A DNA stretch of 64,000 nt, from contig NEEC01000042.1 in assembly GCA_002189035.1 (NCBI GenBank), positions 128,885 through 192,884 of the forward strand, in the 5' to 3' direction. The stretch comes from Utricularia gibba. Its lineage: Eukaryota > Plantae > Magnoliophyta. The position numbers and the translations under genes are program-made. Of this stretch, positions 1-62,387 are shown piece by piece; the first letter of the stretch is position 1, and each line of letters starts with the position of its first letter. The notes under the pieces are model-generated. The model did no database searches. It saw nothing but the letters and a program-made list of their open reading frames with translations, and was not told the origin of the DNA.

Positions 1-504
1 GCTCGAATCTTGCAGGTAGGCTCATGATTGCCTTGCTAATCACCTTTTGATCCTCAAGTTTTTCCCCCAATCCTCGAATCTCCTTCACAAGCTTCGCAGT
101 ACGTTCATAATAGACTTGTATGGTTTCATTGTCTAACATTTTGTTCCTCTCAAAGTCCTCCAGCTTGTTTTTGCATAATATCTCTCTGAGTTTGGCATCG
201 CCTTCATAATGGGATTTGAGAGTATCCCATATTTCTTTGCTGATTGACACTCTGCAATATCATCAAATAGATGTTCAGAGATGGCTTGATACAAGGCATC
301 CATTGCTTCATCTTTTCTCTGTTGAAGATACTCAGCTTCCTCTTGCTGTTCTGATGTGGATTTGCTTGTTATTGTAATAGCCGGAATCTCCCTTTCAACA
401 ACATCCCAAATCTTTCTGACCCGAAGGTAGCTGCGCATCTTTTTGACCCAGCTTCCATACTCTGAACCATCAAATATTGGAGGTCCTCTACCAGATGCCA
501 TCAT
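1..504 (-). pseudogene. gag: Copia gag, copy 1, 1-bp frameshift (possibly a sequencing error), partial
   Basis: T-run at 236-238 has three Ts versus four in other copies; translation diverges after CQSAK. Confidence 0.7.
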
Positions 505-610
505 AGCCACCGCTTGACAAGCTTTGGGTTGATACTTGGTAATCTACCAAGTAAAAAACGCTGAACGGTATATAAAATACTGAAACGAACACAGGTTTGA
601 GAACCTTACT

Positions 611-622
611 GCTCTGATACCA
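611..622 (-). other. Primer-binding site complementary to plant initiator tRNA-Met, copy 1
   Basis: Minus strand TGGTATCAGAGC immediately after the LTR-terminal CA; the canonical plant iMet PBS. Confidence 0.93.
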
Positions 623-947
623 TGTTGTTGCAAGAAAAATAGAGTCTTGGGAAGTAACAAAAAGGTAATGCTTATGAGATCACCTTGGATGAAAAACGAC
701 TCATGAACAATAAGAATGACCGAAAACCTAATTGACACGCATTTCTAGTAGGGCTTATATATACCAAATACCTAGGTTACCCAACAGTGGGCCACAATCA
801 TTGAAAACACACAAAAAGCCCAACAACTCGAATCCAACACTTCCATGCTCGAACCCAACACCTTTTTTTATCTGAAATATGACATTATGACACAAGTTTA
901 GTTCTTCCAATCACCTTCAAGCTTTGGATTGAGGCTGATCTCCAACA
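623..947 (-). repeat. 5' LTR (325 bp), copy 1
   Basis: On the minus strand begins TGTTGGAG and ends GCAACAACA (TG...CA, 5-bp terminal inverted repeat TGTTG/CAACA), directly followed by the PBS. Confidence 0.9.
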
Positions 948-18200: not shown

Positions 18201-21200
18201 GTGCACCCCACATGATTTTTTCGACAACTTACTTTATACATGGGAGGCGGTCTTGGGGGTACCTGGAACCGGAAAATGGTCAGCTTAGGCTTGGGCCGAT
18301 AGTAAGTTGTAGCCCGGCAAAGAAAGTGATGTATTTATTAACGTTCGGTTTTCGGGGTTGCCTACATGGTTTTTCAAGGAACATCTTCCGTTTTGTGGTG
18401 GAGTCTCGCTGGGAACTTTGTCCTGGACCTCGATTCTTATGTCTTATGAGGTCAACCGGATGCAAATCGATGAAAAAATTGATGCATTTGTTTAAATTAC
18501 GATATCACGTGCACCCTACATGATTTTTTCAACATTACTTTATACTTGAGGAGGTGGTCTTGGGGGCAAGAGAACCAGACAACGGTCATATTAGGCTTGG
18601 GCCGAAAGTAAGTTTAGCCCGGCAAAGAAAGTGATGTATTTATTAACGTTCGGTTTTCAGGGTTGCCTACATGGTTTTCCAAGGAAAACTTCGTTTTGTG
18701 GCGGCCGCTCTCGCAGGGCACTTGGTCCGGACCCTGATTCTTTATGGCTCATGAGGACAAAGGATGCAAATCGATGAAAATAATGATGCATTTGTTTAAA
18801 TTACGATGTCGCGTGCACCCCAAATGATTTTTTAACAACATACTTTATACATGAGGAGGCGGTCTTGGGGGCACTTGGAACCGGAAAAAGATCAGCTTAG
18901 GCTTGGGCCGAAAGTAAGTTGTAGCCCGGCAAAGAAAGTGATGTATTTATTATCGTTCGGTTTTGGGGTTGCCTACATGGTTTTTCAAGGAACATCTTCT
19001 CGTTTTGTGGTGGCTAGTCTCGCTGGGAACTGGTCCTTGACCCCGATTCTGTATGGCTCATGGGGTCAACCGGATGCAAATCGAAGAAAAAAAATGATGC
19101 ATTTGTTTAAATTACGATATCACGTGCACCCCCATGATTTTTTCGACAACTTACTTTATACATGGGGAGGCGGTCTTGGGGTACCTGGAACCGGAAAATG
19201 GTCAGCTTAGGCTTGGGCCGATAGTAAGTTGTAGCCCGAAAGAAAGTGATGTATTTATTATCGTTCGGTTTTCGGGGTTGCCTACATGGTTTTTCAAGGA
19301 ACATCTTCCGTTTTGTGGTGGCCAGTCTCGCTGGGAACTTTGTCCTGGACCCGATTCTGTATGGCTCATGGGTCAAAAGGATGCAAATCGATGAACAATG
19401 ATGCATTTGTTTAATTACGATATCACGTGCACCCCACATGATTTTTTCGACAACTTACTTTATACATGGGGAGGCGGTCTTGGGGGACCTGGAACCGGAA
19501 AATGGTCAGCTTAGGCTTGGGCCGATAGTAAGTTGTAGCCCGGCAAAGAAAGTGATGTATTTATTAACGTTCGGTTTTCGGGTTGCCTACATGGTTTTTC
19601 AAGGAACATCTTCTCGTTTTGTGGTGGCCTCGCTGGGAACTTTGTCCTGGACCGATTCATTATGTTATGGGTCAACCGGATGCAAATCGATGAAAAAAAT
19701 GATGCATTTGTTTAAATTACGATATCACGTGCACCCTACATGATTTTTTCAACAACTTACTTTATACTTGAGGAGGTGGTCTTGGGGGGCAAGAGGAACC
19801 AGACAACGGTCATATTAGGCTTGGGCCGAAAGTAAGTTTAGCCCGGCAAAGAAAGTGATGTATTTATTAACGTTCGGTTTTCAGGGTTGCCCTACATGGT
19901 TTTCCAAGGAAAAGCTTCGTTTTGTGGCGGCCGTCTCGCAGGGGACTTGGTCCGGCCCCTGATTCTTTATGGCTCATGAGGAAAAAGGATGCAAATCGAT
20001 GAAAATAATGATGCATTTGTTTAAATTACGATGTCGTGCACCCCAAATGATTTTTTTAACAACATACTTTATACATGAGGAGGCGGTCTTGGGGGCACTT
20101 GGAACCGGAAAAAGATCAGCTTAGGCTTGGGCCGAAAGTAAGTTGTAGCCCGGCAAAGAAAGTGATGTATTTATTATCGTTCGGTTTTTGGGGTTGCCTA
20201 CATGGTTTTTCAAGGAACATCTTCTCGTTTTGTGGTGGCTAGTCTCGCTGGGAAATGGTCCTTGACCCGATTCTGTATGGCTCATGGGGTCAACCGGATG
20301 CAAATCGAAGAAAAAAATGATGCATTTGTTTAAATTACGATATCACGTGCACCCTACATGATTTTTTCGACAACTTACTTTATACATGAGGCGGTCTTGG
20401 GGGTACCTGGAACCGGAAAATGGTCAGCGTAGGCTTGGGCCGATAGTAAGTTGTAGCCCGACAAATAAAGTAATGTATTTATTATCGTTCGGTTTTCGGA
20501 AGCTGCCTAAATGGTTTTTGAAAGAACATCTTCTCGTTTTATGGCGGCCAGTCTCGCTGGGAACTTGTCCTTGACCCTGGTTCTGTATGGCTCATGGGGT
20601 CAACCGGATGCAAATCGATGAAAAAAATGATGCATTTGTTTAAATTGCGATATCACGTGCACCCCACATGATTTTTTAACAACTTACTTTATACTTGAGG
20701 AGGCGATCTTAGGGTGCACCTCGAACAGGACAAAGGTAAGGTTTGGCTTGCGCCGAGTTAGTTGTAGCCCGACAAAGAAAGTGATGTATTTATTATCGTT
20801 CGGTTTTTGGGGTTGCCTACATGGTTTTTCAAGGAACATCTTCTCGTTTTGTGGCAGCCAGTCTCGCTGGGAGCTTTGTCCTGGACCCCGATTCTGTATG
20901 GCTCATGGGTCAAAAGGATGCAAATCGATGAAAACAATGATGCATTTGTTTAAATTACGATATCACGTGCACCCCACATGATTTTTTCGACAACTTACTT
21001 TATACATGGGGAGGCGGTCTTGGGGGGTACCTGGAACCGGAAAATGGTCAGCTTAGGCTTGGGCCGATAGTAAGTTGTAGCCCGGCAAAGAAAGTGATGT
21101 ATTTATTATCGTTCGGTTTTCGGGCTTCCTACATGGTTTTCAAGGAACATCTTCTCGTTTGTGGCGCCAGTCTCGCTGGGACTTTGTCCTGGACCCGATT

Positions 21201-24200: not shown

Positions 24201-27200
24201 CAAGGAAAAGCTTTTCGTTTTGTGGCGGCCGCTCTCGCAGGGCACTTGGTCCGGGCCCCTGATTCTTTATGGCTCATGAGGACAAAAGGATGCAAATCGA
24301 TGAAAATAATGATGCATTTGTTTAAATTACGATGTCGCGTGCACCCCAAATGATTTTTTAACAACATACTTTATACATGAGGAGGCGGTCTTGGGGGCAC
24401 TTGGAACCGGAAAAAGATCAGCTTAGGCTTGGGCCGAAAGTAAGTTGTAGCCCGGCAAAGAAAGTGATGTATTTATTATCGTTCGGTTTTTGGGGTTGCC
24501 TACATGGTTTTTCAAGGAACATCTTCTCGTTTTGTGGTGGCTAGTCTCGCTGGGAACATGGTCCTTGACCCCGATTCTGTATGGCTCATGGGGTCAACCG
24601 GATGCAAATCGAAGAAAAAAAATGATGCATTTGTTTAAATTACGATATCACGTGCACCCTACATGATTTTTTCGACAACTTACTTTATACATGGGGAGGC
24701 GGTCTTGGGGGGTACCTGGAACCGGAAAATGGTCAGCGTAGGCTTGGGCCGATAGTAAGTTGTAGCCCGACAAATAAAGTAATGTATTTATTATCGTTCG
24801 GTTTTCGGAAGCTGCCTAAATGCTTTTTGAAAGAACATCTTCTCGTTTTATGGCGGCCAGTCTCGCTGGGAACTTGGTCCTTGACCCTGGTTCTGTATGG
24901 CTCATGGGGTCAACCGGATGCAAATCGATGAAAAAAAATGATGCATTTGTTTTAAATTGCGATATCACGTGCACCCCACATGATTTTTTCAACAACTTAC
25001 TTTATACTTGAGGAGGCGATCTTAGGGTGCACCTCGAACAGGACAAAGGTAAGGTTTGGCTTGCGCCGAGAGTTAGTTGTAGCCCGACAAATAAAGTGAT
25101 GTATTTATTATCGTTCGGTTTTCGGGGCTGCCTACATGGTTTTTAAGGAACCGCTTCTCGTTTTGTGGTGGCCAGTCTCGCTGGGAACTTGGTCCTTGAC
25201 CCCGATTCTGTATTGCTCATGAGGTCAACCGGATGCAAATCATTAAAAAAAAATGATGCATTTGTTTAAATTACGATGTCACGTGCACCCCACATGATTT
25301 TTTAAACAACATACTTTATACATGAGGAGGCAGTCTTGGGTGCATTTGGAACGGGAAAAGGTAAGGTTTTGCGTGCCGAGAGTTAGTTGTAGCCGGCAAA
25401 TAAAGTGATGTATTTATTATCGTTCGGTTTACGGGGGCTTCCTACATGGTTTTTCAAGGAGCATCTTCTCGTTTTGTGGCAGCCAGTCTCGCTGGGAGCT
25501 TTGTCCTGGACCCCGATTCTGTATGGCTCATGGGGTCAAAAGGATGCAAATCGATGAATACAATGATGCATTTGTTTCAATTACGATATCACGTGCACCC
25601 CACATGATTTTTTCGACAACTTACTTTATACATGGGAGGCGGTCTTGGGGGTACCTGGAACCGGAAAAATGGTCAGCTTAGGCTTGGGCCGATAGTAAGT
25701 TGTAGCCCGGCAAAGAAAGTGATGTATTTATTATCGTTCGGTTTTCGGGGTTCCTACATGGTTTTTCAAGGAACATCTTCTCGTTTTGTGGCAGCCAGTC
25801 TGGAGCTTTGTCTGGACCCGATTCTGTATGGCTCATGGGTCAAAGGATGCAAATCGATGAATACAATGATGCATTTGTTTAATTACGATATCACGTGCAC
25901 CCACATGATTTTTGACAACTTACTTTATACATGGGGAGGCGGTCTTGGGGGGCAAGAGGAACCAGACAACGGTCATATTAGGCTTGGGCCGAAAGTAAGT
26001 TGTAGCCCGGCAAAGAAAGTGATGTATTTATTAACGTTCGGTTTTCAGGTTTCCTACATGGTTTTCCAAGGAAAAGCTTTTCGTTTTGTGGCGGCCGCTC
26101 TCGCAGGGCACTTGGTCCGGGCCCCTGATTCTTTATGGCTCATGAGGACAAAAGGATGCAAATCGATGAAAATAATGATGCATTTGTTTAAATTACGATG
26201 TCGCGTGCACCCAAATGATTTTTTTAACAACATACTTTATACATGAGGAGGCGGTCTTGGGGGCACTTGGAACCGGAAAAAGATCAGCTTAGGCTTGGGC
26301 CGAAAGTAAGTTGTAGCCCGGCAAAGAAAGTGATGTATTTATTATCGTTCGGTTTTGGGGTTGCCTACATGGTTTTTCAAGGAACATCTTCTCGTTTTGT
26401 GGTGGCTAGTCTCGCTGGGAACATGGTCCTTGACCCCGATTCTGTATGGCTCATGGGGTCAACCGGATGCAAATCGAAGAAAAAAAATGATGCATTTGTT
26501 TAAATTACGATATCACGTGCACCCTACATGATTTTTTCGACAACTTACTTTATACATGGGAGGCGGTCTTGGGGGTACCTGGAACCGGAAAATGGTCAGC
26601 GTAGGCTTGGGCCGATAGTAAGTTGTAGCCCGACAAATAAAGTAATGTATTTATTATCGTTCGGTTTTCGGAAGCTGCCTAAATGCTTTTTGAAAGAACA
26701 TCTTCTCGTTTTATGGCGGCCAGTCTCGCTGGGAACTTGGTCCTTGACCCTGGTTCTGTATGGCTCATGGGGTCAACCGGATGCAAATCGATGAAAAAAA
26801 ATGATGCATTTGTTTAAATTGCGATATCACGTGCACCCCACATGATTTTTTCAACAACTTACTTTATACATGAGGAGGCGATCTTAGGGTGCACCTCGAA
26901 CAGGACAAAGGTAAGGTTTGGCTTGCGCCGAGAGTTAGTTGTAGCCCGACAAAGAAAGTGATGTATTTATTATCGTTCGGTTTTTGGGGTTTACATGGTT
27001 TTTCAAGGAACTTTCTCGTTTTGTGGTGCCAGTCTCGCTGGCTTGGTCCTGACCCCGATTCTGTATGCTCATGGGTCAAGGATGCAAATCAATGAAAAAA
27101 AATGATGCATTTGTTTAAATTACGATATCACGTGCACCCCACATGATTTTTTCACAACTTACTTTATACATGGGAGGCGTCTTGGGTACCTGGAACCGGA

Positions 27201-48300: not shown

Positions 48301-49850
48301 ATGATTTTTTCGACAACTTACTTTATACATGGGGAGGCGGTCTTGGGGGGTACCTGGAACTGGAAAATGGTCAGCGTAGGCTTGGGCCGATAGTAAGTTG
48401 TAGCCCGACAAATAAAGTAATGTATTTATTATCGTTCGGTTTTCGGAAGCTGCCTAAATGCTTTTTGAAAGAACATCTTCTCGTTTTATGGCGGCCAGTC
48501 TCGCTGGGAACTTGGTCCTTGACCCTGGTTCTGTATGGCTCATGGGTCAACCGGATGCAAATCGATGAAAAAAAATGATGCATTTGTTTAAATTGCGATA
48601 TCACGTGCACCCCACATGATTTTTTCAACAACTTACTTTATACTTGAGGAGGCGATCTTAGGGTGCACCTCGAACAGGACAAAGGTAAGGTTTGGCTTGC
48701 GCCGAGAGTTAGTTGTAGCCCGACAAATAAAGTGATGTATTTATTATCGTTCGGTTTTCGGGGGCTGCCTACATGGTTTTTCAAGGAACCGCTTCTCGTT
48801 TTGTGGTGGCCAGTCTCGCTGGGAACTTGGTCCTTGACCCCGATTCTGTATTGCTCATGAGGTCAACCGGATGCAAATCAATTAAAAAAAATGATGCATT
48901 TGTTTAAATTACGATGTCACGTGCACCCCACATGATTTTTTTAACAACATACTTTATACATGAGGAGGCAGTCTTTGAGTGCATTTGGAACGGGACAAAG
49001 GTAAGGTTTTGCGTGCACCGAAAGTAAGTTGTAGCCCGGCAAAGAAAGTGATGTATTTATTAACGTTCGGTTTTCAGGGTTGCCTACATGGTTTTCCAAG
49101 GAAAAGCTTTTCGTTTTGTGGCGGCCGCTCTCGCTGGGCACTTGGTCCGGGCCCCTGATTCTTTATGGCTCATGAGGACAAAATGATGCAAATCGATGAA
49201 AATAATGATGCATTTGTTTAAATTACGATGTCGCGTGCACCCCAAATGATTTTTTTAACAACATACTTTATACATGAGGAGGCGGTCTTGGGGGCACTTG
49301 GAACCGGAAAAAGATCAGCTTAGGCTTGGGCCGAAAGTAAGTTGTAGCCCGGCAAAGAAAGTGATGTATTTATTATCGTTCGGTTTTTGGGGTTGCCTAC
49401 ATGGTTTTTCAAGGAACATCTTCTCGTTTTGTGGTGGCTAGTTTCGCTGGGAACTTGGTCCTTGACCCCGATTCTGTATGGCTCATGGGGTCAACCGGAT
49501 GCAAATCGAAGAAAAAAATGATGCATTTGTTTAAATTACGATATCACGTGCACCCTACATGATTTTTTCGACAACTTACTTTATACATGGGGAGGCGGTC
49601 TTGGGGGGTACCTGGAACCGGAAAATGGTCAGCTTAGGCTTGGGCCGATAGTAAGTTGTAGCCCGGCAAAGAAAGTGATGTATTTATTATCGTTCGGTTT
49701 ACGGGGCTTCCTAAATGCTTTTTGAAAGAACATCTTCTCGTTTTATGGCGGCCAGTCTCGCTGGGAACTTGGTCCTTGACCCTGGTTCTGTATGGCTCAT
49801 GGGGTGATGAAAAAAAATGATGCATTTGTTTAAATTACGGTATCACGTGC
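45374..49850. repeat. Satellite block between copia fragments 2 and 3 (~14 monomers; order H-G-G-D-E-C-F/A-B-D-E-C-F/A-B-D/E)
   Basis: Same monomer landmarks; internal 5-mer period of 1567 bp (C-type ORF starts 47096 and 48663). Confidence 0.93.
49683..49688 (-). terminator. Candidate polyadenylation signal AATAAA supplied by satellite, ~140 nt past the gag stop (copy 3; equivalent site at each full copy)
   Basis: Plus-strand TTTATT within GTATTTATTA is AATAAA on the minus strand; present in essentially every monomer. Use in vivo not shown. Confidence 0.3.
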
Positions 49851-50585
49851 CCTGGTTATATTCATATTGTGCATTTTGGTGAGGAGAGCAGATTCACCAT
49901 AAGTTTTCTCAACTTCATTACCATCTCTTAGTTCCAATCTCTTTTCTGTAGATTGCAACTCAATCATGATCTCTCTAAATGTTGGCTCTGGTGTAACAGG
50001 ATATTCAGGATACAGCTGATGGAGCTTTCCTTCAATAATGTCAAGGATTTTTCTTTCTGTCTCAAGTGCACATAACTTTGGCTCGAATCTTGCAGGTAGG
50101 CTCATGATTGCCTTGCTAATCACCTTTTGATCCTCAAGTTTTTCCCCCAATCCTCGAATCTCCTTCACAAGCTTCGCAGTACGTTCATAATAGACTTGTA
50201 TGGTTTCATTGTCTAACATTTTGTTCCTCTCAAAGTCCTCCAGCTTGTTTTTGCATAATATCTCTCTGAGTTTGGCATCGCCTTCATAATGGGATTTGAG
50301 AGTATCCCATATTTCTTTTGCTGATTGACACTCTGCAATATCATCAAATAGATGTTCAGAGATGGCTTGATACAAGGCATCCATTGCTTCATCTTTTCTC
50401 TGTTGAAGATACTCAGCTTCCTCTTGCTGTTCTGATGTGGATTTGCTTGTTATTGTAATAGCCGGAATCTCCCTTTCAACAACATCCCAAATCTTTCTGA
50501 CCCGAAGGTAGCTGCGCATCTTTTTGACCCAGCTTCCATACTCTGAACCATCAAATATTGGAGGTCCTCTACCAGATGCCATCAT
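49830..50585 (-). CDS. gag: C-terminally truncated Ty1/copia Gag (251 aa from first ATG), open frame, copy 3
   Basis: N-terminal PPIFDGSEYGSWVKKMRSYLRVRKIWDVVE resembles the copia gag N-terminal motif (DUF4219-like); AKEIWDTLKSHYEG...ETIQVYYER...KVISKAIMSLPARFEP resembles Retrotran_gag_2/UBN2. The ORF track starts 2 codons earlier at a GTG. Stop codon lies in satellite DNA; no CX2CX4HX4C knuckle. Confidence 0.85.
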   Translation of the reverse strand: MMASGRGPPIFDGSEYGSWVKKMRSYLRVRKIWDVVEREIPAITITSKSTSEQQEEAEYLQQRKDEAMDALYQAISEHLFDDIAECQSAKEIWDTLKSHYEGDAKLREILCKNKLEDFERNKMLDNETIQVYYERTAKLVKEIRGLGEKLEDQKVISKAIMSLPARFEPKLCALETERKILDIIEGKLHQLYPEYPVTPEPTFREIMIELQSTEKRLELRDGNEVEKTYGESALLTKMHNMNITRARDTVI

Positions 50586-50691
50586 AGCCACCGCTTGACA
50601 AGCTTTGGGTTGATACTTGGTAATCTACCAAGTAAAAAACGCTGAACGGTATATAAAATACTGAAACGAACACAGGTTTGAGAACCTTACT

Positions 50692-50703
50692 GCTCTGATA
50701 CCA
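50692..50703 (-). other. tRNA-iMet PBS, copy 3
   Basis: TGGTATCAGAGC adjacent to LTR end. Confidence 0.93.
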
Positions 50704-51028
50704 TGTTGTTGCAAGAAAAATAGAGTCTTGGGAAGTAACAAAAAGGTAATGCTTATGAGATCACCTTGGATGAAAAACGACTCATGAACAATAAGAATGA
50801 CCGAAAACCTAATTGACATGCATTTCTAGTAGGGCTTATATATACCAAATACCTAGGTTACCCAACAGTGGGCCACAATCATTGAAAACACACAAAAAGC
50901 CCAACAACTCGAATCCAACACTTCCATGCTCGAACCCAACACCTTTTTTTATCTGAAATATGACATTATGACACAAGTTTAGTTCTTCCAATCACCTTCA
51001 AGCTTTGGATTGAGGCTGATCTCCAACA
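50704..51028 (-). repeat. 5' LTR (325 bp), copy 3
   Basis: As copy 1. Confidence 0.9.
50836..50844 (-). promoter_or_regulatory. Putative LTR TATA box (present in all seven LTRs; copy 1 at 755..763)
   Basis: Minus strand TATATATAAGCC near the middle of the LTR, oriented towards PBS and gag; a TGGGCC (site II-like) motif lies ~25 bp upstream. Confidence 0.55.
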
Positions 51029-52999
51029 CTTGGTCCGAGCCCCTGATTCTTTATGGCTCATGAGGACAAAAGGATGCAAATCGATGAATACAATGATGCA
51101 ATTGTTTAAATTACGATATCACGTGCACCCTACATGATTTTTTCAACAACTTACTTTATACTTGAGGAGGTGGTCTTGGGGGGCAAGAGGAACCGGACAA
51201 AGGTCAGCTTATGCTTGGGTCGAAAGTAAGTTGTAGCCTGACAAAGAAAGTGATCTATTTATTAACGTTCGGTTTTCGGGGCTACCTACATGGTTTTTCA
51301 AGGAACCGCTTCTCGTTTTGTGGCGGCCAGTCTCGCTGGGAACTTGGTCCTTTACCCCGATTCTGTATGGCTCATGGGGTCAACCGGATGCAAATCGAAG
51401 AAAAAAAATGATGCATTTGTTAAATTACGATATCACGTGCACCCTACATGATTTTTTCGACAACTTACTTTATACATGGGGAGGCGGTCTTGGGGGTACC
51501 TGGAACTGGAAAATGGTCAGCGTAGGCTTGGGCCGATAGTAAGTTGTAGCCCGACAAATAAAGTAATGTATTTATTATCGTTCGGTTTTCGGAAGCTGCC
51601 TAAATGCTTTTTGAAAGAACATCTTCTCGTTTTATGGCGGCCAGTCTCGCTGGGAACTTGGTCCTTGACCCTGGTTCTGTATGGCTCATGGGGTCAACCG
51701 GATGCAAATCGATGAAAAAAAATGATGCATTTGTTTAAATTGCGATATCACGTGCACCCCACATGATTTTTTCAACAACTTACTTTATACTTGAGGAGGC
51801 GATCTTAGGGTGCACCTCGAACAGGACAAAGGTAAGGTTTGGCTTGCGCCGAGAGTTAGTTGTAGCCCGACAAATAAAGTGATGTATTTATTATCGTTCG
51901 GTTTTCGGGGGCTGCCTACATGGTTTTTCAAGGAACCGCTTCTCGTTTTGTGGTGGCCAGTCTCGCTGGAAACTTGGTCCTTGACCCCGATTCTGTATTG
52001 CTCATGAGGTCAACCGGATGCAAATCAATTAAAAAAAATGATGCATTTGTTTAAATTACGATGTCACGTGCACCCCACATGATTTTTTTAACAACATACT
52101 TTATACATGAGGAGGCAGTCTTTGAGTGCATTTGGAACGGGACAAAGGTAAGGTTTTGCGTGCACCGAAAGTAAGTTGTAGCCCGGCAAAGAAAGTGATG
52201 TATTTATTAACGTTCGGTTTTCAGGGTTGCCTACATGGTTTTCCAAGGAAAAGCTTTTCGTTTTGTGGCGGCCGCTCTCGCTGGGCACTTGGTCCGGGCC
52301 CCTGATTCTTTATGGCTCATGAGGACAAAATGATGCAAATCGATGAAAATAATGATGCATTTGTTTAAATTACGATGTCGCGTGCACCCCAAATGATTTT
52401 TTTAACAACATACTTTATACATGAGGAGGCGGTCTTGGGGGCACTTGGAACCGGAAAAAGATCAGCTTAGGCTTGGGCCGAAAGTAAGTTGTAGCCCGGC
52501 AAAGAAAGTGATGTATTTATTATCGTTCGGTTTTTGGGGTTGCCTACATGGTTTTTCAAGGAACATCTTCTCGTTTTGTGGTGGCTAGTTTCGCTGGGAA
52601 CTTGGTCCTTGACCCCGATTCTGTATGGCTCATGGGGTCAACCGGATGCAAATCGAAGAAAAAAAATGATGCATTTGTTTAAATTACGATATCACGTGCA
52701 CCCTACATGATTTTTTCGACAACTTACTTTATACATGGGGAGGCGGTCTTGGGGGGTACCTGGAACCGGAAAATGGTCAGCTTAGGCTTGGGCCGATAGT
52801 AAGTTGTAGCCCGGCAAAGAAAGTGATGTATTTATTATCGTTCGGTTTACGGGGGCTTCCTAAATGCTTTTTGAAAGAACATCTTCTCGTTCTATGGCGG
52901 CCAGTCTCGCTGGGAACTTGGTCCTTGACCCTGGTTCTGTATGGCTCATGGGGTGATGAAAAAAAATGATGCATTTGTTTAAATTACGGTATCACGTGC
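51029..52999. repeat. Satellite block (~6.3 monomers; H-E-C-F/A-B-D/E) of the composite unit
   Basis: (A/G)CGTGC landmark ends at 51126, 51440, 51755, 52071, 52385, 52699, 52999. Confidence 0.95.
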
Positions 53000-53734
53000 C
53001 CTGGTTATATTCATATTGTGCATTTTGGTGAGGAGAGCAGATTCACCATAAGTTTTCTCAACTTCATTACCATCTCTTAGTTCCAATCTCTTTTCTGTAG
53101 ATTGCAACTCAATCATGATCTCTCTAAATGTTGGCTCTGGTGTAACAGGATATTCAGGATACAGCTGATGGAGCTTTCCTTCAATAATGTCAAGGATTTT
53201 TCTTTCTGTCTCAAGTGCACATAACTTTGGCTCGAATCTTGCAGGTAGGCTCATGATTGCCTTGCTAATCACCTTTTGATCCTCAAGTTTTTCCCCCAAT
53301 CCTCGAATCTCCTTCACAAGCTTCGCAGTACGTTCATAATAGACTTGTATGGTTTCATTGTCTAACATTTTGTTCCTCTCAAAGTCCTCCAGCTTGTTTT
53401 TGCATAATATCTCTCTGAGTTTGGCATCGCCTTCATAATGGGATTTGAGAGTATCCCATATTTCTTTTGCTGATTGACACTCTGCAATATCATCAAATAG
53501 ATGTTCAGAGATGGCTTGATACAAGGCATCCATTGCTTCATCTTTTCTCTGTTGAAGATACTCAGCTTCCTCTTGCTGTTCTGATGTGGATTTGCTTGTT
53601 ATTGTAATAGCCGGAATCTCCCTTTCAACAACATCCCAAATCTTTCTGACCCGAAGGTAGCTGCGCATCTTTTTGACCCAGCTTCCATACTCTGAACCAT
53701 CAAATATTGGAGGTCCTCTACCAGATGCCATCAT
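52979..53734 (-). CDS. gag: Truncated copia Gag, open frame, copy 4
   Basis: Translation identical to copy 3 in the ORF track. Confidence 0.85.
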   Translation of the reverse strand: MMASGRGPPIFDGSEYGSWVKKMRSYLRVRKIWDVVEREIPAITITSKSTSEQQEEAEYLQQRKDEAMDALYQAISEHLFDDIAECQSAKEIWDTLKSHYEGDAKLREILCKNKLEDFERNKMLDNETIQVYYERTAKLVKEIRGLGEKLEDQKVISKAIMSLPARFEPKLCALETERKILDIIEGKLHQLYPEYPVTPEPTFREIMIELQSTEKRLELRDGNEVEKTYGESALLTKMHNMNITRARDTVI

Positions 53735-53840
53735 AGCCACCGCTTGACAAGCTTTGGGTTGATACTTGGTAATCTACCAAGTAAAAAACGCTGAACGGTA
53801 TATAAAATACTGAAACGAACACAGGTTTGAGAACCTTACT

Positions 53841-53852
53841 GCTCTGATACCA
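53841..53852 (-). other. tRNA-iMet PBS, copy 4
   Basis: TGGTATCAGAGC adjacent to LTR end. Confidence 0.93.
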
Positions 53853-54177
53853 TGTTGTTGCAAGAAAAATAGAGTCTTGGGAAGTAACAAAAAGGTAATG
53901 CTTATGAGATCACCTTGGATGAAAAACGACTCATGAACAATAAGAATGACCGAAAACCTAATTGACATGCATTTCTAGTAGGGCTTATATATACCAAATA
54001 CCTAGGTTACCCAACAGTGGGCCACAATCATTGAAAACACACAAAAAGCCCAACAACTCGAATCCAACACTTCCATGCTCGAACCCAACACCTTTTTTTA
54101 TCTGAAATATGACATTATGACACAAGTTTAGTTCTTCCAATCACCTTCAAGCTTTGGATTGAGGCTGATCTCCAACA
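53853..54177 (-). repeat. 5' LTR (325 bp), copy 4
   Basis: As copy 1. Confidence 0.9.
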
Positions 54178-56148
54178 CTTGGTCCGAGCCCCTGATTCTT
54201 TATGGCTCATGAGGACAAAAGGATGCAAATCGATGAATACAATGATGCAATTGTTTAAATTACGATATCACGTGCACCCTACATGATTTTTTCAACAACT
54301 TACTTTATACTTGAGGAGGTGGTCTTGGGGGGCAAGAGGAACCGGACAAAGGTCAGCTTATGCTTGGGTCGAAAGTAAGTTGTAGCCTGACAAAGAAAGT
54401 GATCTATTTATTAACGTTCGGTTTTCGGGGCTACCTACATGGTTTTTCAAGGAACCGCTTCTCGTTTTGTGGCGGCCAGTCTCGCTGGGAACTTGGTCCT
54501 TTACCCCGATTCTGTATGGCTCATGGGGTCAACCGGATGCAAATCGAAGAAAAAAAATGATGCATTTGTTTAAATTACGATATCACGTGCACCCTACATG
54601 ATTTTTTCGACAACTTACTTTATACATGGGGAGGCGGTCTTGGGGGGTACCTGGAACTGGAAAATGGTCAGCGTAGGCTTGGGCCGATAGTAAGTTGTAG
54701 CCCGACAAATAAAGTAATGTATTTATTATCGTTCGGTTTTCGGAAGCTGCCTAAATGCTTTTTGAAAGAACCTTCTCGTTTTATGGCGGCCAGTCTCGCT
54801 GGGAACTTGGTCCTTGACCCTGGTTCTGTATGGCTCATGGGGTCAACCGGATGCAAATCGATGAAAAAAAATGATGCATTTGTTTAAATTGCGATATCAC
54901 GTGCACCCCACATGATTTTTTCAACAACTTACTTTATACTTGAGGAGGCGATCTTAGGGTGCACCTCGAACAGGACAAAGGTAAGGTTTGGCTTGCGCCG
55001 AGAGTTAGTTGTAGCCCGACAAATAAAGTGATGTATTTATTATCGTTCGGTTTTCGGGGGCTGCCTACATGGTTTTTCAAGGAACCGCTTCTCGTTTTGT
55101 GGTGGCCAGTCTCGCTGGGAACTTGGTCCTTGACCCCGATTCTGTATTGCTCATGAGGTCAACCGGATGCAAATCAATTAAAAAAAATGATGCATTTGTT
55201 TAAATTACGATGTCACGTGCACCCCACATGATTTTTTTAACAACATACTTTATACATGAGGAGGCAGTCTTTGAGTGCATTTGGAACGGGACAAAGGTAA
55301 GGTTTTGCGTGCACCGAAAGTAAGTTGTAGCCCGGCAAAGAAAGTGATGTATTTATTAACGTTCGGTTTTCAGGGTTGCCTACATGGTTTTCCAAGGAAA
55401 AGCTTTTCGTTTTGTGGCGGCCGCTCTCGCTGGGCACTTGGTCCGGGCCCCTGATTCTTTATGGCTCATGAGGACAAAATGATGCAAATCGATGAAAATA
55501 ATGATGCATTTGTTTAAATTACGATGTCGCGTGCACCCCAAATGATTTTTTTAACAACATACTTTATACATGAGGAGGCGGTCTTGGGGGGCACTTGGAA
55601 CCGAAAAAGATCAGCTTAGGCTTGGGCCGAAAGTAAGTTGTAGCCCGGCAAAGAAAGTGATGTATTTATTATCGTTCGGTTTTTGGGGTTGCCTACATGG
55701 TTTTTCAAGGAACATCTTCTCGTTTTGTGGTGGCTAGTTTCGCTGGGAACTTGGTCCTTGACCCCGATTCTGTATGGCTCATGGGGTCAACCGGATGCAA
55801 ATCGAAGAAAAAAAAATGATGCATTTGTTTAAATTACGATATCACGTGCACCCTACATGATTTTTTCGACAACTTACTTTATACATGGGGAGGCGGTCTT
55901 GGGGGGTACCTGGAACCGGAAAATGGTCAGCTTAGGCTTGGGCCGATAGTAAGTTGTAGCCCGGCAAAGAAAGTGATGTATTTATTATCGTTCGGTTTAC
56001 GGGGGCTTCCTAAATGCTTTTTGAAAGAACATCTTCTCGTTCTATGGCGGCCAGTCTCGCTGGGAACTTGGTCCTTGACCCTGGTTCTGTATGGCTCATG
56101 GGGTGATGAAAAAAATGATGCATTTGTTTAAATTACGGTATCACGTGC
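54178..56148. repeat. Satellite block (~6.3 monomers) of the composite unit
   Basis: Near-identical to 51029..52999 at an offset of 3149 bp. Confidence 0.95.
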
Positions 56149-56883
56149 CCTGGTTATATTCATATTGTGCATTTTGGTGAGGAGAGCAGATTCACCATAA
56201 GTTTTCTCAACTTCATTACCATCTCTTAGTTCCAATCTCTTTTCTGTAGATTGCAACTCAATCATGATCTCTCTAAATGTTGGCTCTGGTGTAACAGGAT
56301 ATTCAGGATACAGCTGATGGAGCTTTCCTTCAATAATGTCAAGGATTTTTCTTTCTGTCTCAAGTGCACATAACTTTGGCTCGAATCTTGCAGGTAGGCT
56401 CATGATTGCCTTGCTAATCACCTTTTGATCCTCAAGTTTTTCCCCCAATCCTCGAATCTCCTTCACAAGCTTCGCAGTACGTTCATAATAGACTTGTATG
56501 GTTTCATTGTCTAACATTTTGTTCCTCTCAAAGTCCTCCAGCTTGTTTTTGCATAATATCTCTCTGAGTTTGGCATCGCCTTCATAATGGGATTTGAGAG
56601 TATCCCATATTTCTTTTGCTGATTGACACTCTGCAATATCATCAAATAGATGTTCAGAGATGGCTTGATACAAGGCATCCATTGCTTCATCTTTTCTCTG
56701 TTGAAGATACTCAGCTTCCTCTTGCTGTTCTGATGTGGATTTGCTTGTTATTGTAATAGCCGGAATCTCCCTTTCAACAACATCCCAAATCTTTCTGACC
56801 CGAAGGTAGCTGCGCATCTTTTTGACCCAGCTTCCATACTCTGAACCATCAAATATTGGAGGTCCTCTACCAGATGCCATCAT
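56128..56883 (-). CDS. gag: Truncated copia Gag, open frame, copy 5
   Basis: Translation identical to copy 3 in the ORF track. Confidence 0.85.
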   Translation of the reverse strand: MMASGRGPPIFDGSEYGSWVKKMRSYLRVRKIWDVVEREIPAITITSKSTSEQQEEAEYLQQRKDEAMDALYQAISEHLFDDIAECQSAKEIWDTLKSHYEGDAKLREILCKNKLEDFERNKMLDNETIQVYYERTAKLVKEIRGLGEKLEDQKVISKAIMSLPARFEPKLCALETERKILDIIEGKLHQLYPEYPVTPEPTFREIMIELQSTEKRLELRDGNEVEKTYGESALLTKMHNMNITRARDTVI

Positions 56884-56989
56884 AGCCACCGCTTGACAAG
56901 CTTTGGGTTGATACTTGGTAATCTACCAAGTAAAAAACGCTGAACGGTATATAAAATACTGAAACGAACACAGGTTTGAGAACCTTACT

Positions 56990-57001
56990 GCTCTGATACC
57001 A
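56990..57001 (-). other. tRNA-iMet PBS, copy 5
   Basis: TGGTATCAGAGC adjacent to LTR end. Confidence 0.93.
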
Positions 57002-57326
57002 TGTTGTTGCAAGAAAAATAGAGTCTTGGGAAGTAACAAAAAGGTAATGCTTATGAGATCACCTTGGATGAAAAACGACTCATGAACAATAAGAATGACC
57101 GAAAACCTAATTGACATGCATTTCTAGTAGGGCTTATATATACCAAATACCTAGGTTACCCAACAGTGGGCCACAATCATTGAAAACACACAAAAAGCCC
57201 AACAACTCGAATCCAACACTTCCATGCTCGAACCCAACACCTTTTTTTATCTGAAATATGACATTATGACACAAGTTTAGTTCTTCCAATCACCTTCAAG
57301 CTTTGGATTGAGGCTGATCTCCAACA
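57002..57326 (-). repeat. 5' LTR (325 bp), copy 5
   Basis: As copy 1. Confidence 0.9.
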
Positions 57327-59261
57327 CTTGGTCCGAGCCCCTGATTCTTTATGGCTCATGAGGACAAAAGGATGCAAATCGATGAATACAATGATGCAAT
57401 TGTTTAAATTACGATATCACGTGCACCCTACATGATTTTTTCAACAACTTACTTTATACTTGAGGAGGTGGTCTTGGGGGCAAGAGGAACCGGACAAAGG
57501 TCAGCTTATGCTTGGGTCGAAAGTAAGTTGTAGCCTGACAAAGAAAGTGATCTATTTATTAACGTTCGGTTTTCGGGGCTACCTACATGGTTTTTCAAGG
57601 AACCGCTTCTCGTTTTGTGGCGGCCAGTCTCGCTGGGAACTTGGTCCTTTACCCCGATTCTGTATGGCTCATGAGGTCAACCGGATGCAAATCGAAGAAA
57701 AAAAAATGATGCATTTGTTTAAATTACGATATCACGTGCACCCTACATGATTTTTTCAACTTACTTTATACTTGGGGAGGCGGTCTTGGGGGTACCTGGA
57801 ACTGGAAAAGGTCAGGTAGGCTTGGGCCGATAGTAAGTTGTAGCCCGACAAATAAAGTAATGTATTTATTATCGTTCGGTTTTCGGGGCTACCTACATGG
57901 TTTTTCAAGCCGCTTCTCGTTTTGTGGCGGCCAGTCTCGCTGGGAACTTGGTCCTTTACCCCGATTCTGTATGGCTCATGAGGTCAACCGGATGCAAATC
58001 GATTAAAAAAAATGATGCATTTGTTTAAATTGCGATATGACGTGCACCCCAATGATTTTTTCAACAACTTACTTTATACTTGGGGGAGGCGGTCTTGGGT
58101 GCACCTGGAACGGGACAAAGGTCAGCTTAGGCTTGGCCGAGAGTAAGTTGTAGCCCGACAAAGAAAGTGATGTATTTATTATCGTTCGGTTTTCGGGGGC
58201 TGCCTACATGGTTTTTCAAGGAACCGCTTCTCGTTTTGTGGCGGCCAGTCTCGCTGGAACTTGTCCTTGACCCGATTCTGTATGGCTCATGAGGTGATGC
58301 AATCGATTAAAAAATGATGCATTTGTTTAAATTACGATATCGTGCACCCCACATGATTTTTTAAACAACTTTATACATGAGGAGGCAGTCTTGGGTGCAT
58401 TTGGAACGGACAAAGGTAAGGTTTTGCTGCACCGAAAGTAAGTTGTAGCCCGCAAAGAAAGTGATGTATTTATTAACGTTCGGTTTTCAGGGTTGCCTAC
58501 ATGGTTTTCCAAGGAAAAGCTTTTCGTTTTGTGGCGGCCGCTCTCGCTGGGCACTTGGTCCGGGCCCCTGATTCTTTATGGCTCATGAGGACAAAAGGAT
58601 GCAAATCGATGAAATAATGATGCATTTGTTTAAATTACGATGTCGCGTGCACCCCAAATGATTTTTTTAACAACATACTTTATACATGAGGAGGCGGTCT
58701 TGGGGGGCACTGGAACCGGAAAAAGATCAGCTTAGGCTTGGCCGAAAGTAAGTTGTAGCCCGGCAAAGAAAGTGATGTATTTATTATCGTTCGGTTTTTG
58801 GGGTTGCCTACATGGTTTTTCAAGGAACATCTTCTCGTTTTGTGGTGGCTAGTTTCGCTGGGAACTTGGTCCTTGACCCCGATTCTGTATGGCTCATGGG
58901 TCAACCGGATGCAAATCGAAGAAAAAAAATGATGCATTTGTTTAAATTACGATATCACGTGCACCCTACATGATTTTTTCGACAACTTACTTTATACATG
59001 GGGAGGCGGTCTTGGGGGGTACCTGGAACCGGAAAATGGTCAGCTTAGGCTTGGGCCGATAGTAAGTTGTAGCCCGGCAAAGAAAGTGATGTATTTATTA
59101 TCGTTCGGTTTTCGGGGGCTTCCTAAATGCTTTTTGAAAGAACATCTTCTCGTTTTGGCGGCCAGTCTCGCTGGGAACTTGGTCCTTGACCCTGGTTCTG
59201 TATGGCTCATGGGGTGATGAAAAAAAAATGATGCATTTGTTTAAATTACGGTATCACGTGC
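57327..59261. repeat. Satellite block (~6.3 monomers) of the composite unit, indel-rich
   Basis: Same monomer order but with many small deletions and mixed variant signatures at 57700-58400. Confidence 0.9.
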
Positions 59262-59993
59262 CCTGGTTATATTCATATTGTGCATTTTGGTGAGGAGAGA
59301 TTCACCATAAGTTTTCTCAACTTCATTACCATCTCTTAGTTCCAATCTCTTTTCTGTAGATTGCAACTCAATCATGAACTCTCTAAATGTTGGCTCTGGT
59401 GTAACAGGATATTCAGGATACAGCTGATGGAGCTTTCCTTCAATAATGTCAAGGATTTTTCTTTCTGTCTCAAGTGCACATAACTTTGGCTCGAATCTTG
59501 CAGGTAGGCTCATGATTGCCTTGCTAATCACCTTTTGATCCTCAAGTTTTTCCCCCAATCCTCGAATCTCCTTCACAAGCTTCGCAGTACGTTCATAATA
59601 GACTTGTATGGTTTCATTGTCTAACATTTTGTTCCTCTCAAAGTCCTCCAGCTTGTTTTTGCATAATATCTCTCTGAGTTTGGCATCGCCTTCATAATGG
59701 GATTTGAGAGTATCCCATATTTCTTTTGCTGATTGACACTCTGCAATATCATCAAATAGATGTTCAGAGATGGCTTGATACAAGGCATCCATTGCTTCAT
59801 CTTTTCTCTGTTGAAGATACTCAGCTTCCTCTTGCTGTTCTGATGTGGATTTGCTTGTTATTGTAATAGCCGGAATCTCCCTTTCAACAACATCCCAAAT
59901 CTTTCTGACCCGAAGGTAGCTGCGCATCTTTTTGACCCAGCTTCCATACTCTGAACCATCAAATATTGGAGGTCCTCTACCAGATGCCATCAT
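59241..59993 (-). CDS. gag: Truncated copia Gag, open frame, copy 6 (250 aa)
   Basis: In-frame 3-bp loss (ESALL to ESLL) and I to F change (REIM to REFM). Confidence 0.8.
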   Translation of the reverse strand: MMASGRGPPIFDGSEYGSWVKKMRSYLRVRKIWDVVEREIPAITITSKSTSEQQEEAEYLQQRKDEAMDALYQAISEHLFDDIAECQSAKEIWDTLKSHYEGDAKLREILCKNKLEDFERNKMLDNETIQVYYERTAKLVKEIRGLGEKLEDQKVISKAIMSLPARFEPKLCALETERKILDIIEGKLHQLYPEYPVTPEPTFREFMIELQSTEKRLELRDGNEVEKTYGESLLTKMHNMNITRARDTVI

Positions 59994-60098
59994 AGCCACC
60001 CTTGACAAGCTTTGGGTTGATACTTGGTAATCTACCAAGTAAAAAACGCTGAACGGTATATAAAATACTGAAACGAACACAGGTTTGAGAACCTTACT

Positions 60099-60110
60099 GC
60101 TCTGATACCA
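60099..60110 (-). other. tRNA-iMet PBS, copy 6
   Basis: TGGTATCAGAGC adjacent to LTR end. Confidence 0.93.
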
Positions 60111-60435
60111 TGTTGTTGCAAGAAAAATAGAGTCTTGGGAAGTAACAAAAAGGTAATGCTTATGAGATCACCTTGGATGAAAAACGACTCATGAACAATA
60201 AGAATGACCGAAAACCTAATTGACACGCATTTCTAGTAGGGCTTATATATACCAAATACCTAGGTTACCCAACAGTGGGCCACAATCATTGAAAACACAC
60301 AAAAAGCCCAACAACTCGAATCCAACACTTCCATGCTCGAACCCAACACCTTTTTTTATCTGAAATATGACATTATGACACAAGTTTAGTTCTTCCAATC
60401 ACCTTCAAGCTTTGGATTGAGGCTGATCTCCAACA
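60111..60435 (-). repeat. 5' LTR (325 bp), copy 6
   Basis: As copy 1. Confidence 0.9.
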
Positions 60436-62387
60436 CTTGGTCCGAGCCCCTGATTCTTTATGGCTCATGAGGACAAAAGGATGCAAATCGATGAATACAA
60501 TGATGCAATTGTTTAAATTACGATATCACGTGCACCCTACATGATTTTTTCAACAACTTACTTTATACTTGAGGAGGTGGTCTTGGGGGGCAAGAGGAAC
60601 CGGACAAAGGTCAGCTTATGCTTGGGTCGAAAGTAAGTTGTAGCCTGACAAAGAAAGTGATCTATTTATTAACGTTCGGTTTTCGGGCTACCTACATGGT
60701 TTTTCAAGGAACCGCTTCTCGTTTTGTGGCGGCCAGTCTCGCTGGGAACTTGGTCCTTTACCCCGATTCTGTATGGCTCATGGGGTCAACCGGATGCAAA
60801 TCGAAGAAAAAAAATGATGCATTTGTTTAAATTACGATATCACGTGCACCCTACATGATTTTTTCGACAACTTACTTTATACATGGGGAGGCGGTCTTGG
60901 GGTACCTGGAACGGAAAATGGTCAGCGTAGGCTTGGGCCGATAGTAAGTTGTAGCCCGACAAATAAAGTAATGTATTTATTATCGTTCGGTTTTCGGGCT
61001 GCCTACATGCTTTTTGAAAGAACATCTTCGTTTTTGGCGGCCAGTCTCGCTGGGAACTTGGTCCTTGACCCTGGTTCTGTATGGCTCATGGGGTCAACCG
61101 GATGCAAATCGATGAAAAAAAATGATGCATTTGTTTAAATTGCGATATCACGTGCACCCCACATGATTTTTTCAACAACTTACTTTATACTTGAGGAGGC
61201 GATCTTGGGGCACCTCGAACGGACAAAGGTAAGGTTTGGCTTGCGCCGAGAGTTAGTTGTAGCCCGACAAATAAAGTGATGTATTTATTATCGTTCGGTT
61301 TTCGGGGGCTGCCTACATGGTTTTCAAGGAACCGCTTCTCGTTTTGTGGTGGCCAGTCTCGCTGGGAACTTGGTCCTTGACCCCGATTCTGTATTGCTCA
61401 TGAGGTCAACCGGATGCAAATCGATTAAAAAAATGATGCATTTGTTTAAATTACGATATCACGTGCACCCCACATGATTTTTTTAACAACTACTTTATAC
61501 ATTGAGGAGGCAGTCTTTGAGTGCATTTGGAACGGGACAAAGGTAAGGTTTGGGCCGAAAGTAAGTTGTAGCCCGGCAAAGAAAGTGATGTATTTATTAA
61601 CGTTCGGTTTTCAGGGTTGCCTACATGGTTTTCCAAGGAAAAGCTTTTCGTTTTGTGGCGGCCGCTCTCGCTGGGCACTTGGTCCGGGCCCCTGATTCTT
61701 TATGGCTCATGAGGACAAAAGATGCAAATCGATGAAAATAATGATGCATTTGTTTAAATTACGATGTCGCGTGCACCCCAAATGATTTTTTTAACAACAT
61801 ACTTTATACATGAGGAGGCGGTCTTGGGGGGCACTTGGAACCGGAAAAAGATCAGCTTAGGCTTGGGCCGAAAGTAAGTTGTAGCCCGGCAAAGAAAGTG
61901 ATGTATTTATTATCGTTCGGTTTTTGGGGTTGCCTACATGGTTTTTCAAGGAACATCTTCTCGTTTTGTGGTGGCTAGTCTCGCTGGGAACTTGGTCCTT
62001 GACCCCGATTCTGTATGGCTCATGGGGTCAACCGGATGCAAATCGAAGAAAAAAAATGATGCATTTGTTTAAATTACGATATCACGTGCACCCTACATGA
62101 TTTTTTCGACAACTTACTTTATACATGGGGAGGCGGTCTTGGGGGGTACCTGGAACCGGAAAATGGTCAGCTTAGGCTTGGGCCGATAGTAAGTTGTAGC
62201 CCGGCAAAGAAAGTGATGTATTTATTATCGTTCGGTTTTCGGGGGCTTCCTAAATGCTTTTTGAAAGAACATCTTCTCGTTATGGCGGCCAGTCTCGCTG
62301 GGAACTTGGTCCTTGACCCTGGTTCTGTATGGCTCATGGGGTGATGAAAAAAAATGATGCATTTGTTTAAATTACGGTATCACGTGC
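60436..62387. repeat. Satellite block (~6.3 monomers) of the composite unit
   Basis: Same H-E-C-F/A-B-D/E order as 51029..52999. Confidence 0.92.

Follow-up and report, generated by a model that had tools for sequence, protein, structure and literature searches.

The window analysed here (the whole stretch of 64,000 nucleotides) consists of satellite DNA and seven copies of a 1.2-kb cassette, which reads on the minus strand as an LTR, a PBS, a leader and a gag open reading frame. This cassette is a fragment of a member of the Ty1/copia group and not a complete element. It is truncated at its 3' end, where it is joined to the satellite, and was recently amplified together with it; it is probably dead and now carried as a silenced passenger. 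Apart from the seven cassettes (1176 bp per copy) all of the 64 kb is satellite, and there is therefore no pol and no 3' LTR; other long open reading frames, the protease-integrase-RT-RNase H region of pol, a polypurine tract and a 3' LTR with target-site duplication were all looked for in the window and not found.

An earlier note on this DNA had described an intact 325-bp LTR with a TATA motif, followed by PBS and leader, an ATG at 50585 opening 251 uninterrupted codons, final codons and a TAA taken from the satellite, and a satellite AATAAA about 140 nt further on. This layout is borne out by our analysis, the LTR running from 51028 to 50704 with one TATATATAA and an adjoining TGGTATCAGAGC, and the reading frame being recovered in an ORF check. 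The features of copy 3 are as follows:

50704 to 51028, minus strand: 5' LTR, 325 bp, termini TGTTG..CAACA, 38% GC
50836 to 50844, minus strand: TATATATAA, the sole TATA-like motif within the LTR
50692 to 50703, minus strand: PBS TGGTATCAGAGC, abutting the LTR directly
50586 to 50691, minus strand: untranslated leader
49856 to 50585, minus strand: element-derived gag, about 243 codons, with a DUF4219-like N-terminus and a Retrotran_gag_2 capsid domain, without the CCHC knuckle
49851 to 49855, minus strand: CCAGG, 5 nt at the deletion junction, matching neither parent-type gag nor satellite
49830 to 49850, minus strand: last six to seven codons or so (ARDTVI) and TAA, satellite-derived
49683 to 49688, minus strand: AATAAA in a satellite monomer, 142 nt past the stop

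The TG..CA termini with their short terminal inverted repeat, and a PBS of the initiator tRNA-Met type adjoining the 5' LTR, are as found in Ty1/copia elements; TGGTATCAGAGC is complementary to the plant initiator tRNA-Met at its 3' end, the classic PBS of this group. No tRNA genes are present within the 64-kb window. Part of the LTR (50906-51030) is matched by an identical 125-bp contig in X1, an independent DNA run from 2013. From the position of the TATA motif, transcription is predicted to start at about 50815-50805, and two short upstream ORFs (ATG at 50785, 10 aa; ATG at 50704, 5 aa) lie between this predicted start and the main ATG. The main frame ends with the TAA at 49832-49830. Its product is a copia-type gag by its match to Pfam PF14223 (Retrotran_gag_2; 96 bits against a cutoff of 27, E=2e-27), the match to DUF4219 is weak, and Pfam finds no CCHC zinc knuckle in the ORF. 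An AlphaFold single-sequence model of the product had a mean pLDDT of 40 and was unusable.

The 3' end of the gag frame is formed by a junction with the satellite. Satellite homology stops at 49850 and homology to the parent-type gag stops at 49856, and the tail of the protein (..NITRARDTVI) and its stop are read from the satellite motif AATTTAAAC. A 154-bp contig in X1 crosses this junction (49811-49964) without mismatch at a depth of 38, which is comparable to the depth over the body of gag. A second X1 contig (depth 19, 4 mismatches in 109 bp) departs from the cassette at 49856 and stays in frame; this is a parent-type element, in which gag continues past the break. The end of gag is a DNA junction seen in genomic reads and not a stop created by splicing, as in the shGAG transcripts discussed below. 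The stop-giving motif is present in 119 of the 156 monomers and AATAAA in 146 of them, so these designed-looking features are not special, and a stop no more than seven codons past a random junction is unremarkable.

The seven copies are 99.25-100% identical and are arranged as follows:

1 to 947, minus strand: copy 1, cut by the window start; frame closed after 123 codons
44178 to 45373, minus strand: copy 2, 5.65 kb from copy 3; frame closed after 56 codons
49830 to 51028, minus strand: copy 3; frame open, 251 aa
52979 to 54177, minus strand: copy 4, identical to copy 3; frame open, 251 aa
56128 to 57326, minus strand: copy 5, identical to copy 3; frame open, 251 aa
59241 to 60435, minus strand: copy 6; frame open, 250 aa
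62367 to 63563, minus strand: copy 7; frame closed after 35 codons, with indels in the LTR too

Copy 6 has an in-frame loss of 3 nt, one amino-acid change and the loss of 1 nt in the leader. Copies 3-6 do have open frames, as had been claimed previously, and these are attributable to youth rather than to selection because divergence among cassettes is close to zero (0-2 substitutions per 1178 bp). The suggested promoter spacing of ~3 kb is correct for copies 3-7, where the spacings are 3149, 3149, 3113 and 3126 bp, but not for copy 2 at 5.65 kb or for copy 1, which is separated from copy 2 by ~43 kb of plain satellite.

These four spacings correspond to complete composite higher-order units (49830 to 62366, minus strand), each made up of one 1.2-kb cassette and approximately 6.2 monomers of the satellite, whose monomer length is about 314 bp; a fifth, partial unit joins the four full ones. 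The units are 97.2-99.7% identical in register as compared with ~86% out of register, the behaviour of a satellite higher-order repeat. The two junctions are the same in every copy and the flanks nearly identical. In all of them, the distant copies 1 and 2 included, the conserved core takes in ~300 bp on the upstream side of the LTR and ~800 bp on the downstream side of gag. We considered whether selection or independent spread of the cassette could explain its uniformity (0 substitutions as against up to 184 in the satellite flanks), and reject this since the near-identity runs on for ~300 bp and ~800 bp into those flanks. Variation is confined to the central part of the satellite in between, and such a pattern fits exchange between satellites. 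With regard to the satellite itself, the length of the monomer (313/314 bp) suggested the X43.1 satellite of Silene latifolia, whose published probe core is absent from the window, and six k-mers from the monomer gave no match in the literature. A plus-strand ORF of 204 aa at 25632-26246 was dismissed as chance, being a repeated peptide read across two monomers.

We infer the following order of events. A full-length element would have integrated into a ~314-bp monomer after ..GGACCAAG, where the LTR end is intact. A deletion or illegitimate recombination may then have fused gag, at about codon 243, to a monomer further downstream at its GCACGTG point. Pol, the 3' LTR and the remainder of gag would have been lost in this step, and 5 nt of filler left behind. 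What survives of the element is the 5' LTR with the PBS and leader, and a gag that breaks off shortly before the nucleocapsid knuckle. A block of ~2.3 kb (the cassette with ~300 bp and ~800 bp of satellite) would finally have been amplified in the array, by segmental duplication or unequal exchange, to give the 3.1-kb higher-order repeat; this amplification was very recent. On this account the gene-like finish, with its stop and AATAAA, would be an accident of monomer content and the open frames an accident of youth. The most likely present state is that of a silenced passenger in CpG-dense satellite heterochromatin. Were silencing to lapse, RNA would be expected to arise from each LTR ~30 nt past the TATA box. 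Judged from its anatomy, the cassette allows such RNA either to end at the satellite AATAAA, as a gag-only mRNA of ~1.15 kb, or to read through the satellite to the next LTR. In copies 7-4 that LTR follows each gag at a distance of ~1.97 kb and in the same orientation, and the earlier view that the LTR terminator is missing is therefore wrong for these copies.

Evidence from RNA comes from the assembled contigs of three probable RNA runs (X15, X20 and X10), which cannot show absence. One of the three contains no matching contig. No junction-spanning contig and no satellite-containing contig was found among the contigs of these runs, a result by which silence is not provable. X10, which carries another organism label, contains a 210-bp gag contig (depth 2.4) that is 99% identical to the cassette. 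In X20 we encountered a contig that covers the final ~107 nt of an LTR with 98% identity, which continues into a sequence that is not the PBS and is absent from the window, and which must therefore derive from a different LTR copy. Its end corresponds to ~50810-50813, some 30 nt past the TATA motif, although contig ends cannot define starts. The contig hints that another LTR of the cassette's family can start transcription, and the family may have LTRs that are active at some locus.

A silent passenger, which the earlier note had offered as its own alternative, is the likeliest reading and a better bet than the chimeric transcription unit that the note proposed. It is possible, if doubtful, that the array is instead a set of conditionally active promoters whose LTRs fire weakly or upon a drop in methylation, the resulting gag-satellite RNAs feeding siRNA production and the upkeep of heterochromatin or silencing the parent copia family in trans. 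An intact LTR with its TATA motif points into the satellite in every unit, and several copies have an undamaged promoter side of identical sequence, which counts against silence; initiation of transcription in the LTR of a related copy would fit the X20 contig, the gag contig of X10 is likewise consistent with the proposal, and there is precedent in the Athila2 LTR co-transcripts (PMC1317654) and in EVD gag-only RNA as a trigger of siRNA (PMC5580714). These points have to be set against the three runs, whose contigs include neither the junction nor the satellite, and against the demonstrable origin of the X20 contig at another locus. It is highly improbable that the product is translated into a functional, knuckle-less Gag, for example a dominant-negative inhibitor of particle assembly by the parent family. 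Gag-derived restriction factors such as Ty1 p22 and Fv1 are analogous in principle to such a Gag-only inhibitor; a 251-codon frame with a complete N-terminus and capsid domain is open in four copies, and the layout is like that of the natural shGAG gag-only mRNA of Ty1/copia elements. However, three of the seven copies are frameshifted, the copies are too alike for a test of selection, two upstream ATGs occur in the leader, and the three positions that differ from the parent-type contig are all first codon positions. Nor is the 251-aa product on record as a called gene product in an exact-sequence look-up, and a word-based search with it among proteins of 138-439 aa gave 260 candidates, none of them significant. 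A still broader proposal, that the spaced cassettes form a promoter array in (peri)centromeric satellite whose LTR-started gag-satellite RNAs or knuckle-less Gag either give rise to small RNAs silencing both the array and the still-intact parent family, or restrict the parent directly, and which would make a naturally amplified 'trap' locus out of half an element, strikes us as decidedly unlikely.

The same-orientation LTRs 1.97 kb downstream of gag in copies 7-4, together with a perfect PBS, raise the prospect that tandem LTR-PBS-gag-[satellite]-LTR units are copied in trans by parent proteins, moving satellite DNA elsewhere. We attach very little probability to this, as no polypurine tract adjoins the downstream LTR (13 of 20 nucleotides upstream of the LTR are purines, the longest run being AGGGG), and the isolated copies 1 and 2 have the junctions and flanks of the tandem copies without a second LTR, which indicates amplification at the DNA level only. 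Repeat collapse or polishing during assembly might likewise have produced the copy number, the identity of copies 3-5 or the frameshifts; these three copies are indeed 100% identical over 1199 bp, and several of the frame-breaking indels occur within short homopolymer or dinucleotide runs. Such an artefact is nevertheless very unlikely, given that the junction is mismatch-free in the independent DNA run at a depth comparable to that of the gag body, that runs from seven studies contain parts of the stretch, and that the satellite between identical cassettes differs by 9-52 substitutions from unit to unit, which is not expected of a collapsed repeat.

If the LTRs are active, the array would provide a clean natural case of promoters placed every ~3 kb inside satellite heterochromatin, and the unique junction sequence would allow transcripts, small RNAs and peptides to be assigned to it unambiguously, something that studies of satellite transcription can seldom achieve. 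In the more likely case that it is silent, its main value is as a well-dated marker. From the identical junctions, the conserved ~2.3-kb core and the near absence of divergence one can read how quickly a new composite unit is built and spread by a satellite array, and where the breakpoints of exchange lie.

The arrangement is reminiscent of several known systems. In Arabidopsis, reverse-strand cen180/106B co-transcripts that run into the 180-bp centromeric satellite start in the Athila2 LTR and are seen only in met1 (May et al. 2005, PMC1317654), and there as here an LTR lies inside a satellite array with its promoter reading into the satellite. That LTR is of the Ty3/Athila type and its transcripts have been demonstrated, on loss of CG methylation (PMC1317654), whereas the present array has a copia LTR with gag, regularly spaced in a higher-order unit, and the contigs of the three RNA runs include no transcript across its junction. 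The predicted LTR-started leader, gag ORF, early stop and nearby poly(A) site are similar to those of shGAG (PMC5580714), and siRNAs are triggered mainly by the gag-only RNA in the case of EVD (Oberlin et al. 2017, PMC5580714). In the case of shGAG, however, the element is intact and the stop comes from alternative splicing, which is coupled to a premature termination close to where integrase begins (PMC5580714), while here the end of gag is fixed in the DNA by the satellite deletion junction and the nucleocapsid part is missing. Identical or near-identical transposable element copies in one satellite locus are also known from Drosophila, where identical Copia elements interrupt the 260-bp satellite, higher-order structure is found in Rsp/1.688, and the element copies have been put down to unequal exchange and to recent structural rearrangement (Khost et al. 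2017, PMC5411766). The Drosophila elements are mostly full-length (PMC5411766), in contrast to the 1.2-kb truncated fragment with fixed junctions that forms a subunit of the 3.1-kb repeat. Finally, LTR retrotransposon sequence is tied to plant satellite arrays in the work of Vondrak et al. (2020, PMC7004042), which describes satellite monomers derived from tandem repeats inside the elements; in our case, by contrast, an unrelated, pre-existing satellite appears to have captured the fragment.

The window is occupied by a single array of a satellite of about 314 bp (947-62342; period 314, ~197 copies and 80% matches in Tandem Repeats Finder), and the only non-satellite DNA within it consists of seven copies of one ~1.18-kb insert. 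This insert, termed the cassette, comprises an LTR, primer binding site, leader and truncated copia gag. Its copies, numbered along the window, were located by a BLAST search of the window with copy 3 (49830-51028) as query; their identity is 99.25-100%, with no differences among copies 3, 4 and 5. Elsewhere, in plain satellite, a 204-codon plus-strand reading frame (25632-26246) reads the same peptide twice over two monomers; it was rejected as a gene, since the repeated peptide points to a chance open frame of the satellite.

Cassette copies in the window, located by BLAST, with the state of the frame from the conserved ATG
1-947, minus strand: copy 1, cut at the window edge; closed after 123 codons
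44178-45373, minus strand: copy 2; closed after 56 codons
49830-51028, minus strand: copy 3, the query; open, 251 codons
52979-54177, minus strand: copy 4; open, 251 codons
56128-57326, minus strand: copy 5; open, 251 codons
59241-60435, minus strand: copy 6; open, 250 codons
62367-63563, minus strand: copy 7; closed after 35 codons

The earlier note's description of the cassette is confirmed in each particular. The intact LTR with its TATA-like motif, the primer binding site and the leader are as stated there, and the Gag frame of 251 codons that it placed at ATG 50585 is borne out by Pfam. Residues 23-183 match Retrotran_gag_2, “gag-polypeptide of LTR copia-type” (96 bits, cutoff 27; E=2e-27), with a weak DUF4219 match at the N-terminus and no match to zinc-knuckle families. 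The LTR-to-gag portion is a genuine retrotransposon fragment. This exact frame is absent from the recorded called gene products. TGGTATCAGAGC is the primer binding site typical of Ty1/copia elements, which pairs with initiator tRNA-Met.

Features of the reference cassette (copy 3)
51028-50704, minus strand: LTR, 325 bp, TGTTG..CAACA termini, 38% GC
50844-50836, minus strand: TATA-like motif TATATATAA, the only one in the LTR
50703-50692, minus strand: primer binding site TGGTATCAGAGC, directly abutting the LTR
50585 (ATG) to 49832-49830 (TAA), minus strand: gag frame, 251 codons, preceded by the leader
49688-49683, minus strand: AATAAA, 142 nt past the stop

The LTR keeps its intact end (TG) right after satellite (..GGACCAAG), which is what insertion by integrase would leave. 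At the gag/satellite junction the tail of the frame (..NITRARDTVI) and its stop are read from the satellite motif AATTTAAAC, as had been claimed, and this junction is spanned without mismatch by a 154-bp contig (49811-49964, depth 38) assembled from X1, a 2013 DNA run under the same organism label; ordinary satellite contigs of X1 part from the window at 49850. Another X1 contig (165 bp), whose depth of 19 is about half that of the chimeric junction contig, tracks gag to 49856 with 4 mismatches in 109 bp (~96% identity) and then departs into other sequence, in which gag remains in frame (..MNI-NSGAINNVKD..). This continuation is absent from the window, so more complete relatives, of a parent type whose gag is longer, exist elsewhere in the genome, and the cassette derives from such an element by deletion. 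Five nucleotides at the break (CCAGG, 49855-49851) belong to neither the gag nor the satellite partner. The satellite phase resumes ~84 bp “earlier” than the entry point on the LTR side, which argues not for simple insertion but for insertion followed by deletion or illegitimate recombination. No contig among those listed bridges the LTR/satellite junction, so independent confirmation is confined to the gag side.

Units 3-6, each a cassette with its satellite (3149, 3149, 3113 and 3126 bp), are 97.2-99.7% identical in register and ~86% identical when shifted by one monomer, and therefore form a true higher-order repeat of the cassette plus ~6.2 monomers. Between units 3 and 5 there are no substitutions in the cassette and 52 in the intervening satellite, and between units 3 and 2 none and 184, respectively. 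The first-sight impression of a cassette far better conserved than its flanks was resolved by a 100-bp profile: all seven copies, the isolated copies 1 and 2 among them, stay near-identical over ~300 bp on the upstream side of the LTR and ~800 bp on the downstream side of gag (51029-51330 and 49030-49850 in copy-3 coordinates), implying an ancestral block of ~2.3 kb. Variation (6-20% divergence) is confined to the centre of each intervening satellite stretch, which places clustered exchange breakpoints in the spacer and not at the cassette. Exchanges among monomers later altered the spacers, which hold 6 monomers in the tandem part and ~14 between copies 2 and 3, and span ~43 kb from copy 1 to copy 2.

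The gene-like finish of the cassette is not special, since 119 of 156 monomers, each anchored at GCACGTGAT, contain the motif that supplies the stop, and 146 have an AATAAA in the same phase. Any sequence fused at the same monomer point and frame would reach a stop after 7 codons and AATAAA ~140 nt further on, the distance previously reported for the cassette. The monomer variant ACCGTAATTTAAACA (C for T; 49838-49841 and equivalents) occurs in exactly six of the 156 monomers, all gag-fused, and thus marks the amplified block alone. Copies 3-6 do have open frames, as the earlier note stated, but these are not evidence of constraint because the copies differ by 0-2 substitutions per 1178 bp. Indels in copies 1, 2 and 7 fall at copy-3 positions 50319, 50424-50423, 50148 and 50526. 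Several or most of the frame-breaking indels lie within short A, G or AG runs and could either be true slippage mutations or have arisen as errors of long-read assembly; more than four copies might therefore really be open.

We propose as the most likely history that a copia element integrated into the satellite, that an internal deletion joined it to a downstream monomer, that unequal exchange recently amplified the product at the DNA level, and that the cassette is now probably a silenced passenger. The structural part, which follows from the anatomy and the DNA contigs, is very probably correct; the four-step history as a whole is moderately probable, the silenced state being inferred from context and the lack of RNA evidence. 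The CpG observed/expected ratio is 0.35 in the LTR and 0.28 in gag (both within 49851-51028), against 0.93 in satellite (e.g. 10001-20000), where each monomer carries ~14 CpG. The cassette lies in DNA that presents methylation targets at high density, a setting compatible with silencing that does not demonstrate it. The satellite itself is not CpG-depleted despite its presumed heterochromatic state.

The main alternative, a conditionally active promoter array feeding small-RNA pathways, seems rather unlikely. The cassette sequence would allow transcription. A start is expected at ~50812, ~30 nt past the TATA box, giving a predicted leader of ~227 nt with two short upstream reading frames (10 and 5 codons), followed by gag and by satellite monomers each carrying AATAAA; a message stopping after the first of these would measure ~1.15 kb, in agreement with the Gag-only mRNA of ~1.1-1.2 kb estimated earlier. 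The supposed lack of a 3' LTR terminator needs correction for copies 7-4, to which one is available because tandem copies are followed, only ~1.97 kb downstream, by another LTR in the same orientation. No polypurine tract precedes that LTR (13/20 purines, longest run AGGGG), which argues against copying of the units as pseudo-elements. A run search found the stretch in DNA runs of seven studies and in no run recorded as RNA. Assembled contigs of three probable RNA runs were compared with 49560-51130: X15 had none on this interval, and X10, under a different organism label, had one 210-bp contig (depth 2.4, 2 mismatches) inside gag (50289-50498), off the junctions. X20 yielded one 185-bp contig, which matches the final 107 nt of the LTR (50810-50704; 98% identical, 1 mismatch, 1 gap) and continues into sequence that is neither primer binding site nor found in the window; its source is therefore an LTR at another locus, either solo or 3'. 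Its LTR-side end at ~50810-50813, ~30 nt past the TATA box, may reflect LTR-started read-out there, although a contig end is no proof of a start and the RNA nature of the run is guessed; it hints, faintly, that this copia family has LTRs able to fire. Expression of the cassette itself is without support in these contigs, and its silence without proof; the chimeric transcription unit of the earlier note is a possible but unsupported reading.

A promoter array would operate like Athila2/106B in Arabidopsis, whose LTR-started co-transcripts into the 180-bp satellite are detectable only in met1 (PMC1317654). The message predicted for the cassette is similar to shGAG, a gag-only mRNA of Ty1/copia elements, but the cassette lacks the defining feature of shGAG, a splicing-made stop coupled to premature termination (PMC5580714). 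In structure, the cassette groups with transposable elements that were copied within a satellite locus; the Drosophila 260-bp array, with its identical Copia elements, is an example (PMC5411766).
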